A stretch of DNA of 63,161 nt, the filler included, from Dimorphilus gyrociliatus (lineage: Eukaryota > Animalia > Annelida), in assembly GCA_904063045.1 (NCBI GenBank). It is 4 parts of 3 records of this genome, joined end to end, with 100 filler letters (N's around TTAATTAATTAA, not from the genome) between each part and the next. Parts side by side here need not be neighbours in the genome. Positions count along the whole stretch, not along the records: positions 16,453 to 38,042 come from CAJFCJ010000128.1; 3 more parts are not named here. One strand, given 5' to 3'. Within the stretch, counting starts at the first letter, position 1, and the number at the start of each line of letters is the position of its first letter. Made by a program: the position numbers and the translations under genes. Shown piece by piece: positions 23,446 to 30,819 of the stretch. The notes under the pieces are model-generated. The model was not told the origin of the DNA and searched no databases. It saw only the letters and a program-made list of their open reading frames with translations.

Positions 23446-26400
23446 TCAACTTATGAAGACAAACTGCTTTTCTTTAGCCAAATTAATAATTGTTTTACTG
23501 CTTTGTTCAGTCAATTGATTATTTGACATATTAACTTTGATTATATTTTGTAATTTGTTTAAAAACTTCAAAAGATCATTAATGATGTAATTATCAATTC
23601 CAATTCCTTCAAAAAATATTAATTCCAATTTTGGTGAGCTTGGTGTGAGACTTTGCAAAAACATTTGAAACCATGAATTACCAATTCTATTGTTGCTTAT
23701 ATCAAAGATTCTTATTGAAAATTGCATATTTAGAAAAGTTTGTAGACTTTTGCAAATGATTTCATTTAAATTTATATCTTTTAATATAATTTCAGTAAAA
23801 TGAATAAATGTGCTTGTCATATTTGTAAAAAAGGATTTTAAATTGTAAAAATTCACATTCATATATGTGAAATTTAACGCCATCTGTTTTACAATTACCT
23901 CATAATTACCAGGAAATTGGGTTATACTCTTTTCAATTAGATCCTTTAATTCGTTAAAAAATCCAGTATTATTGTTGAATGGGCAAAATATTTTACTTGC
24001 AGAAAAGTAGATTACAGCCAAGACTTTAATATCCTTTGCGCATCTTTTCTGTAGGGTTAGGATGATTTTTTCTCGATTTTCATACTCAACAACAATTTCA
24101 TTGAATTGGTAAAGTGTCTTTTTAAATAGGTAGAGAAAGATGAGCATATGATCCAAATTGTAAATGTACATTGGTACGATATCGCTTTTGGGGAATTTAT
24201 ATTGGGAAAGAATACTGTACAACAGTTTTCCTGATGATGATGATAATGGTGATGATTTTGGATTAAAGAATTCTTTCAAGTAGTATTGTTCAATGGGCGA
24301 TAATATGAATAATTTACTGGAATTATGAAAAGATTGGAAAATAGCTTGAGGATTATATCTAATAATTCCAATTGATAAGAGATCATGAATATTCATCGAT
24401 GTTAATTGCGTAAAGTATTTTGTTAGAATATCCAAATGTTGATTGTTATCTTTAAATTGGAAAATTTTCTTTTTCTTCTTCTCTAAAATCTTCAGAAAAG
24501 TTTTAATTGCATTTTGAAACGCCAAAGAATGTTGGGTTGGATTTTTTGATAATTTCAAAAATATTAATAATATACCCAAAGGATGAGTGCAAAATTGTTC
24601 GCATTGTTTTAATGAGCCAACCATTGTTGAATAATGTTGTCCTGTTGATGAAAGATGACAATTTTGCTCACAGTATAAACTGCAAATTTCATTAAGACAT
24701 TTGATATTTTGTTTTGGTTGAACACCTTGAATGGAAAATATAAAATCTACTGGAATTGATGGTTGTATTAAATTTCTTATGAATATTAATTTTTTAATAT
24801 TCTTTGCAGTTTTTCCTTTAAATATATCGCTTATTTTACAATTTGGATGATTTAAACATTCTGTATCGTCGTCGATTAGAATCAATAAATTTTTGGGATT
24901 ATTTTTCAAAAATTTTCTCAAATCCTTCTTAATTTTGTCGTCACTTTTTAATTTTCCATAATTGGATAAGAGGAGACGGTCGAATAGAGATTTAGAATCT
25001 TTTTCTTCGTTTAACGATAGTCTCAATAGTAAAAAATTCTGAAGCGTCTCCTCAATCGACCATAAATATAGTATTCTATTCAATAATGTCGTTTTACCAA
25101 TTTGAGCTGATCCTATAATACAATTATTCACTGCGGAACTAGTAATACAATTTAAAAATTCAATATCATCTAGAGGCTTAGGATTTTTTTGTTTAGGCTT
25201 AATTTGCAGTAGATTTAACGGCATATATAATTGATTGAAAAATTTAGCGCATTTCGGTTGAATGATACTTTGTAGATGGACATCAGGTAGAAATTTTCTA
25301 TTATTTAAATAGTTTATATGATATTTAGCCGTTGTGTTTTTGAATTCATACCAGTTCGTAAAACAAAGATTTCCACTTAACGTATTCAAATTAAAAGTCT
25401 CCTCCTTTTTAACTATTTTCAACATTTCCATTTTAGCTTTGACAATCCATGAATAGAATTTTGAATGGTAAAAACTCTTTGAAGATATTATATTAGTAAG
25501 ACGCTTTAAAATTGATAATCTAATTTTTCGGTCAAAGTTCAAGGTTACTTTTTTCAAATTGCGACATTCAATTAGAAAATTAACAATATTGTCTATATCT
25601 TCTTCAATAACACAACCAGACAGTTTAAATATTCTTAAAGTCATTGAAGAGTTGATTAAATGTTGAAAACAATCGGATAGTAGTAATCTTTCATTCTTCT
25701 TCTCAGACGATTCACTCTTATCAATTTTTGGCCTTTTGCCAAAAGTTAGATAGACTTCTTCCAAATAGTAACAATAGTCGAAAAGATTACATAACTTTTT
25801 CAAACATTGTTCACTTATTTCGCAATTGTTGATATTAAAAACTTTTAGATTGTTGTAAGATTTCAATAGAGAATCGAATATTTTATCTAAACTATTACAA
25901 ATATCTCTATTATCGCCAATATCAATTTCGCTTATATCATGACATTTCGTAAGTAATTCGGCTAATTTATCTCCATCAGTATCATTCAAATTACACGAAT
26001 TGAATTTCAAAGATTGAATTGTTGAACAGGATAATATCAATTTTGAAAGACAATGATTAGCGTTCTCTTCATCGTTATTTCTATCATCAGTGATTTTAAA
26101 TAGATTCTTATTGCAGCTCATATCCAAATAACGTAAAGATCTGCAATAGATGAAAAGATGCATTAATTGCTGTCCGTGTTCCTTATAGGATAAATTACAC
26201 GATTTCATAATTAAGAAATGAAGAAAAGGAGCGCAAGATTTAATTATTGCAGGTATAATGATGTTCATACAATGCTGATTAAAACTTAAATTCAAGTATG
26301 TCAATCTTCTGAATGCTATAAAGAAATTCTTTAATCTCTCTAAAGCGTTTCTTTGTAAATCGTCTAGAAGATCTTTCCTGAAGTCTTTAACGTCTTTGTT

Positions 26401-30819: not shown

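Follow-up and report, generated by a model that had tools for sequence, protein, structure and literature searches.

The minus strand of a 63,161-nucleotide stretch of DNA from the annelid Dimorphilus gyrociliatus (four parts of three records of GenBank assembly GCA_904063045.1, joined with filler; hereafter the window) carries, in the part at positions 16453-38042 from CAJFCJ010000128.1, what is probably a genuine, intron-free gene for an NLR, a receptor with a nucleotide-binding domain as well as leucine-rich repeats, that has two NACHT domains. The gene would belong to a fast-evolving, lineage-specific family that resembles NLRC4 and NAIP in its succession of a CARD-like domain, a NACHT and leucine-rich repeats (LRRs), and more precisely to a subfamily that bears in the same frame a second, very divergent NACHT followed by a short LRR; the layout that results, CARD-like / NACHT1 / LRR / NACHT2 / LRR in a single polypeptide, is likewise the one that we consider likely. 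Whereas canonical animal NLRs have one NACHT per polypeptide, this protein has two, together with the order of nucleotide-binding domain (NBD), helical domain 1 (HD1), winged-helix domain (WHD) and helical domain 2 (HD2), and the C-terminal LRRs of ribonuclease-inhibitor type, that define these receptors.

Two NACHT modules in one reading frame

The open reading frame (ORF) at 23446-30819 is the one outstanding ORF of its part of the window (G+C content 29 %). It is a single stop-free frame of 2457 codons when counted from a TTG, against 172 codons for the longest stop-free run in 200 shuffles of the gene, a length far beyond chance. The first ATG, at 30693, opens a protein of 2415 amino acids (aa) that begins with MDGPSRLL, and this start methionine is identical in all relatives aligned. 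The G-x4-GK[ST] pattern occurs exactly twice in the protein, at aa 181 (GCSGLGKT) and aa 1861 (GSAQIGKT), so that the preliminary description of this DNA had rightly placed two Walker A motifs about 1680 aa apart. Its further claims of a non-canonical Walker B after each P-loop (IILLIDLGKE and LLILIDDDTEC, compared with hhhhDGxDE), of LRR blocks behind each NACHT (ribonuclease-inhibitor-type matches follow both) and of a central LRR tract several hundred residues long were likewise borne out. The coordinates of all these features are given in Table 1.

Table 1. Features of the two-NACHT gene, with positions in the window and residues of the 2415-aa protein.
Feature	Position	Residues	Strand	Basis or remark
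Complete coding sequence	23446..30693	1-2415	-	2415 aa plus stop at 23446-23448; no intron required
CARD-like death-fold domain (probable)	30409..30693	1-95	-	AlphaFold model, structural matches to CARDs
NACHT module 1: pre-NACHT helix, NBD, HD1, WHD, start of HD2	29119..30399	99-525	-	family profile and model
Walker A, module 1, GCSGLGKT	30130..30153	181-188 (lysine K187)	-	motif search, alignment
Walker B, module 1, IILLIDLGKE	29893..29922	258-267	-	D263 and E267 kept; DLGKE in place of the family's DGADE
Region between module 1 and the central LRRs	27847..29013	561-949	-	two LRR-like motifs only (aa 562, aa 734)
Central ribonuclease-inhibitor-type LRR tract	25489..27846	~950-1735	-	interrupted by an irregular stretch at ~aa 1320-1460
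NACHT module 2: pre-NACHT helix, NBD, HD1, WHD	24241..25353	1781-2151	-	Pfam, hhalign, model
Potential GT..AG intron, 56 nt	25076..25131		-	removes Walker A2, frame ends 7 codons later; homologous to the predicted P0001 intron
Walker A, module 2, GSAQIGKT	25090..25113	1861-1868 (lysine K1867)	-	motif search, alignment
Walker B, module 2, LLILIDDDTEC	24856..24888	1936-1946	-	D1941 and D1942 invariant
C-terminal ribonuclease-inhibitor-type LRRs	23449..23826	2290-2415	-	~four repeats

The second P-loop region is, by score and by fold, a NACHT-type STAND (signal transduction ATPases with numerous domains) NTPase, so that the preliminary description withstands the refutation test that it had set on this point. 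Pfam NACHT (PF05729) matches it at aa 1858-1978 with 36.7 bits, above the cutoff of 26.7, and scores higher than NB-ARC (PF00931), which reaches only 14.9 bits (E 0.016) for a cutoff of 23.5. In the AlphaFold model of aa 1690-2415, the NBD and HD1 have predicted local distance difference test (pLDDT) values of 70-90; HD2 is modelled with low confidence, and pLDDT falls below 50 over much of aa 2075-2340, between the NBD/HD1 core and the last LRRs. Foldseek matched this model to NOD2 (2e-10) and, up to 1e-8, to NLRC4 and NLRP3. With VIA-align, model residues 46-462 superpose on NAIP5 (Z 16.6, root-mean-square deviation, rmsd, 3.7, 326 aa), and NLRC4 (Z 16.4), NOD2 (Z 16.4) and NLRP3 (Z 16.2) match nearly as well; animal NLRs account for all ten of the best-scoring chains, and any other fold reaches at most a Z of 9.8. 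Sensor 1 reads FIRN and the HD1 proline lies in THPLG, whereas the WHD histidine is absent. None of the four homologues compared, down to 27 % identity, departs from the G-K-T of Walker A, the DD pair of Walker B, the sensor-1 arginine or the proline of HD1, and the Q-IGKT core of Walker A together with T1869 is likewise invariant (4/4). As only ~45 aa separate the end of the LRRs from the pre-NACHT helix of this module, the module lacks an effector domain of its own.

Module 1 gave no Pfam NACHT match of its own when the whole protein and three pieces of it were scanned with Pfam and NCBIfam, module 2 alone reaching a cutoff, and it is recognized as a NACHT indirectly, through homologues above the cutoff, a profile match to NAIP and NLRC4, and its fold. 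When 1.84 billion representatives were searched with a profile of aa 1-560, 37 proteins (cluster representatives) were retrieved, the best of which align over all 560 residues and several over the P-loop only; the ten matches whose source was looked up are mostly from D. gyrociliatus, several of them named 'NACHT domain-containing protein'. The P-loop regions of the full-length relatives (P0003-P0010) are Pfam NACHT domains above the cutoff, at 35-52 bits, and a 22-sequence family profile compared with the PDB sequences matched NAIP (1.5e-22) and NLRC4 (3e-19), as well as NLRP3 and NOD2. The AlphaFold model of aa 1-560 (pLDDT 82.7, predicted template modelling score 0.80) places aa 99-525 on residues 94-518 of NLRC4 (Z 19.6, 388 aa), followed by NLRP3 (Z 17.5), NAIP5 (Z 17.0) and NOD2 (Z 16.4; Foldseek 4e-11). 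The consensus motifs of the family are GxPGIGK[ST], LLIDGADE, WSR (sensor 1), IPLLA and FYHxSFQEYFAA. In module 1, sensor 1 has become WLE, the arginine being gone in the three Dimorphilus two-NACHT copies and present in the more distant homologue P0039 (see below); the HD1 proline lies in RIPKIA, and the WHD histidine (H445) is present and aligns, in the profile alignment, with the histidine of FHKSFQEY in NLRC4. The same alignment shows a threonine at the sensor-1 position of NLRC4 and an N where module 1 has K. Since NLRC4 itself lacks the sensor-1 arginine, module 1 is non-canonical but not obviously dead, and we regard it as a divergent NACHT-type STAND NTPase.

Ahead of module 1, aa 3-95 form a domain that is probably, rather than demonstrably, CARD-like. 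The preliminary description had suggested a death-fold-like effector domain in the N-terminal ~150 aa; the fold suggested by the model agrees with this, and its extent is shorter, ~95 aa. In the AlphaFold2 model the domain has pLDDT >90 and its helix 1 is divided in two. Such a break in helix 1 is typical of CARDs. The closest structures found by VIA-align are the CARDs of BinCARD (Z 10.2, rmsd 2.5, 87 aa), caspase-1 (Z 9.9), SP100 (Z 9.8), NLRC4 (Z 9.3), an MDA5-MAVS complex (Z 9.3) and ARC (Z 9.1); these six superpositions span the whole domain at rmsd 2.4-2.7, and their Z values of 9.1-10.2 are below the ~13 advised for helical bundles. The family profile aligned with full-length NLRC4 starts at residue 26 in both. 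The assignment is only probable because sequence searches gave no significant death-fold match, neither in Pfam scans of 23 family N-termini, nor with the profile against PDB sequences, nor in an Atlas feature search; matches to CARD_2 (0.024) and DED (0.028) among the 23 N-termini were single-member noise.

No Pfam LRR model scored above its cutoff on the protein. LRR consensus motifs recur at spacings of 28-31 or 54-60 aa over ~aa 1017-1690 and again at aa 2327 and 2384; aa 1001-1700 match ribonuclease inhibitor with E values of 1e-10 to 9e-12, and the last 125 aa match it at 4e-22 and the LRRs of NLRP14 and NLRP3 at ~1e-10. The region at aa 561-949, for which neither PDB sequences nor Pfam gave a match, is conserved among the paralogues, with 40-55 % identity and a ratio of nonsynonymous to synonymous substitution rates (dN/dS) of 0.32.

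Conservation of the layout and kinship of the modules

The closest protein among 5.8 billion is the product of the D. gyrociliatus paralogue DgyrCDS14929 (P0001), with 59 % identity, whose locus (L001) contains an uninterrupted 2441-aa ORF that is colinear over its whole length and has both Walker A motifs. A second paralogue, DgyrCDS14618 (P0038), with ~50 % identity, also has both P-loops, the second of which is matched by Pfam NACHT, and its locus (L004) holds a single 2486-aa ORF. A region-restricted search added P0039, a protein of 2270 aa encoded by one ORF (locus L003) on a Logan contig of run SRR23372229, which is colinear with our NLR protein at 25-28 % identity and has two P-loops. 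P0039 probably comes from another species or organism, because its locus has a G+C content of only 21.9 %, whereas the Dimorphilus loci have 28-30 %, and is not similar to these at the nucleotide level. The survey of paralogues that had been proposed for this gene thus found the tandem layout in two D. gyrociliatus paralogues and in P0039. As four independent loci share an uninterrupted frame with two P-loops, the layout is conserved and no accident of assembly, and the assembly chimera considered in the preliminary description is excluded. The 70-kb contig of P0038 bears one more two-NACHT copy (L002 10001-16339), which is broken up into ORFs of 750, 365, 202 and 288 aa and truncated where the contig stops; this copy represents a pseudogene or else results from assembly errors.

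Independent DNA data agree with the assembly of our gene. Run X1, the only public run with this locus, yields 60 Mb of contigs, near the genome size of 73.8 Mb reported for D. gyrociliatus (PMC8476170), at depths of ~17 and ~38 (a 1:2 pattern), with a flanking repeat at 2835; on the strength of this contig total, of the 1:2 depths and of the repeat depth, we read the run as genomic DNA. One of its contigs covers 24129-27205 without any difference, which supports the assembly across the junction between the LRRs and NACHT2.

Comparison of the gene with its L001 paralogue by the Nei-Gojobori method gave dN/dS values of 0.65 for the CARD-like part (first 150 aa), 0.35 for NBD1, 0.32 and 0.30 for the LRR parts, 0.37 for the junction (aa 1691-1850), 0.34 for NBD2 and 0.31 for LRR2. 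These ratios indicate that both halves of the protein are under purifying selection and equally constrained.

Single-NACHT relatives (among them P0003, which is DgyrCDS11741, P0004, P0005, P0011 and P0015) are colinear with our protein over aa 1-560 (E 1e-32 to 1e-13). These Dimorphilus proteins share with it the probable CARD-like start, the W-x7-K pre-NACHT helix and the QNF and FYHxSFQEYFAA motifs, but they have no module 2 and a single NACHT, in which Walker A follows the canonical GxPGIGK[ST], Walker B reads DGADE and sensor 1 reads WSR. In direct BLASTP the two modules of our protein find each other only at E 0.002; by contrast, hhalign of the module-2 profile with the module-1 family gives a probability of 99.1 % (E 5.9e-19) over 285 columns that begin at the pre-NACHT tryptophan and reach HD1, and judging by this alignment the homology of the modules extends from the helix with that tryptophan as far as HD1. 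In an unrooted tree of the NBDs with long branches, the four NBD2s, P0039's among them, group together (100/100) at the end of a long stem (2.7 substitutions per site), and the three Dimorphilus NBD1s form another clade (100/100) within the single-NACHT family, with the NBD1 of P0039 in the same poorly resolved group. Given these separate clades, NBD2 did not arise recently by copying of NBD1 and, since the NBD2 clade takes in P0039, the two-module state predates the split from the organism of P0039: the layout is older than the divergence of D. gyrociliatus from a second, more AT-rich organism.

An old internal duplication and a fusion of two genes look alike in such an unrooted, long-branched tree. 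Of the fused NLR pair that had been proposed from the sequence, the two NACHT and LRR modules in one conserved frame hold. An origin by fusion of a sensor and a helper does not follow, because module 2 lacks its own effector domain and fusion is indistinguishable from internal duplication in the tree. The companion proposal that one NBD is regulatory or a decoy was not upheld: the lysine of Walker A and the first aspartate of Walker B are preserved in both modules, so from sequence alone decoy status can be assigned to neither, and we infer that both may retain nucleotide binding.

Known systems, mode of action and alternative readings

NLRC4 and NAIP are the best profile matches of the family and the best fold matches of both modules, and they share with our protein the order of CARD-like domain (a probable one in our protein), NACHT (NBD-HD1-WHD-HD2) and ribonuclease-inhibitor-type LRRs; NLRC4 moreover resembles module 1 in having the WHD histidine and no arginine at the sensor-1 position. 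However, they are only 12-15 % identical to our protein, whose two modules are separated by an LRR tract (~780 aa) much longer than theirs, and the BIR domains of NAIP have no match anywhere in our protein (Pfam/NCBIfam). In addition, NAIP and NLRC4 are encoded by separate genes and assemble in trans at ~1:10, whereas here two NACHT-LRR units are covalently linked at 1:1. NLRs that work in pairs, such as NAIP/NLRC4 in animals and the sensor/helper pairs of plants, have a central place in innate immunity, and the animal partners are separate genes. A naturally fused and conserved two-NACHT receptor would set the stoichiometry at 1:1 and offer a compact system for asking how one STAND switch governs another.

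Plants, too, have functional immune receptors in which one polypeptide carries two STAND nucleotide-binding domains, the tandem NB-ARC NLRs WTN1 of wheat (10.1101/2024.08.30.610185) and BPH18 of rice, a CC-NBS-NBS-LRR protein (PMC5041133). These are analogues of independent origin: their domains are NB-ARC, whereas ours are NACHT, with NB-ARC below its cutoff, and in the CC-NBS-NBS-LRR cases the NBDs are adjacent ahead of one LRR instead of each being followed by an LRR tract. Our search of the literature for two, tandem or dual NACHT domains found no such animal NLR beyond one sentence on NAIP-like models of animal genes that have two NACHT and LRR domains (PMC13159474), which, by that description, are BIR-bearing predictions given without conservation analysis. 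A comparative study with D. gyrociliatus among its species reported no NLR homologue in annelids except Paraescarpia echinospica, Lamellibrachia luymesi and Capitella teleta (PMC8476170). The Dimorphilus family contradicts this absence, which is probably explained by a divergence that defeats the Pfam LRR models and, in the two-NACHT subfamily, the NACHT model for module 1. The very compact genome of D. gyrociliatus holds an expanded NLR family, as the 37 cluster representatives matched (several by the P-loop only) indicate.

The most likely mode of action would be that of an NLR with two switches in cis, in which one LRR/NACHT unit, on sensing a ligand, would free the other or nucleate it, and clustering of the single N-terminal CARD-like domain would elicit downstream signalling; speculatively, the protein would be a built-in counterpart of a sensor/executor pair such as NAIP/NLRC4. 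Only tentatively, and with a good deal of doubt, can one go further and see in it a sensor and an executor NLR fused permanently into an intramolecular pair, one unit gating the other under one CARD-like head, kept since before two annelid lineages split, in a divergent family missed by the survey cited above.

Several points weigh against a conserved two-NACHT receptor. The CARD assignment relies on Z values of 9-10 for a small helical bundle without sequence support, the model of module 2 is moderately confident (mean pLDDT 64), and the alignment used to fold it contained sequences of the module-1 family, which biases it towards the NACHT fold. Run X1, behaving like genomic DNA, is silent on transcription of the gene, and the cooperation of the modules is inferred. 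Finally, the public model of P0001 (1842 aa, L001 10001-15639) stops just before Walker A2, where a predicted 56-nt intron (L001 15560-15615) excises that motif and truncates the protein; the model also omits an in-frame 54-nt stretch in the CARD-like domain, compared with the continuous 2441-aa ORF.

If the homologous segment of our gene, which has an identical GT..AG and the same downstream stop, were spliced out, the main product would be a conventional single-NACHT receptor of ~1860 aa, and NACHT2-LRR2 would be made rarely or never. We consider this unlikely, since the putative intron codes for the motif of module 2 that is conserved best, even at 27 % overall identity, the 550 codons behind it are stop-free in four loci with dN/dS of 0.31-0.34, and the deposited model of P0038 reads through the segment. 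The donor also differs, GTGAAT here and GTAAAT in the L001 paralogue, the former being the weaker match to the donor-site consensus. Because the 56-nt segment and the 550 codons behind it are conserved as protein, we take the read-through form to be made; a truncated isoform is possible, and the annotation of the P0001 gene is probably under-called.

The two-NACHT protein could also be produced with its second half idle, NACHT2-LRR2 being the decaying relic of an old tandem duplicate or of a read-through fusion, a structural tail devoid of switch function. The very long NBD2 branch, the unusual Walker A (GSAQIGKT), the lack of the WHD histidine and the poorly modelled stretch at aa 2075-2340 would fit such decay, as would the absence of stand-alone relatives of 404-1286 aa from a word search that used just the C-terminal 735 aa; but decay is hard to reconcile with Walker and sensor-1 residues and an HD1 proline that are invariant across four homologues, with a Pfam NACHT score still above the cutoff and with an NBD2 as constrained as NBD1, and we hold it to be quite improbable. 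Still more remote is the reading of the locus as two adjacent NLR genes or an assembly join, with NACHT2-LRR2 made as a separate protein from an internal promoter. NLR genes are indeed tandemly clustered on small scaffolds of this genome, two copies sharing one 70-kb contig. Yet the junction has no stop, intergenic spacer or frame change in four independent loci of two organisms, it is constrained as coding sequence, the contig of the independent run crosses it without difference, and module 2 would lack an effector domain.

Related gene models and neighbouring features

Some public models of the family appear to include foreign sequence. The deposited model of P0038 (2666 aa) continues beyond the end of the 2486-aa ORF and takes in a fragment of a DDE_3 transposase (L004 13461-14622) and is probably a fusion with a neighbouring transposon remnant; that of P0007 (DgyrCDS14643, 2396 aa), a single-NACHT member, also has FLYWCH and MULE transposase domains and a repeat with a 57-aa period, and is probably fused with a transposon. 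Five long proteins (P0009, P0022, P0026, P0030 and P0031, up to 6252 aa) are arrays of several NTPases, with at least three Walker A motifs each, in most of them spaced ~210-230 aa apart (~400-590 aa in P0030); they matched the query over its P-loop stretch only, with up to 19 matched stretches in P0022. Three overlapping ORFs of >1000 aa at L001 17863-21496 are not real and arise from an assembly gap there, 3.2 kb of N (17899-21126).

Within the coding sequence of module 2, an X1 contig skips 74 nt (24054-24129). We rejected it as an intron of the gene, its GT..AG being on the plus (wrong) strand with 27 nt of support on one side; the skip would shift the frame, and it may stem from a paralogue, from an allele with a deletion or from an artefact of the graph. 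The short stretch at 22923-23130, immediately downstream of the gene, is a high-copy repeat, with an X1 depth of 2835 compared with 15-40 in the gene and several contigs branching at its edges.

The gene had been described as intron-free amid intron-bearing neighbours. No intron is obligatory in it, but the contrast with the neighbours is true of some only. A rhodopsin-family G-protein-coupled receptor 3 kb upstream (33769-34872, minus strand; 7tm_1, E 1.5e-22) is also a single ORF, whereas the pieces of a RING-finger gene at 17971-19290 (plus strand; zf-C3HC4, E 1e-5), followed by more short ORFs, resemble a multi-exon TRIM-like gene. A gap of 10 N lies at 19781-19790. Near the end of this part of the window, a 510-aa ORF (36440-37972, minus strand) has weak matches to F5/8 type C (galactose-binding-like) domains below the cutoff, and the intergenic DNA upstream of the NLR gene contains an imperfect tandem repeat (31429-31610) of ~4 copies of a 41-42-nt unit.

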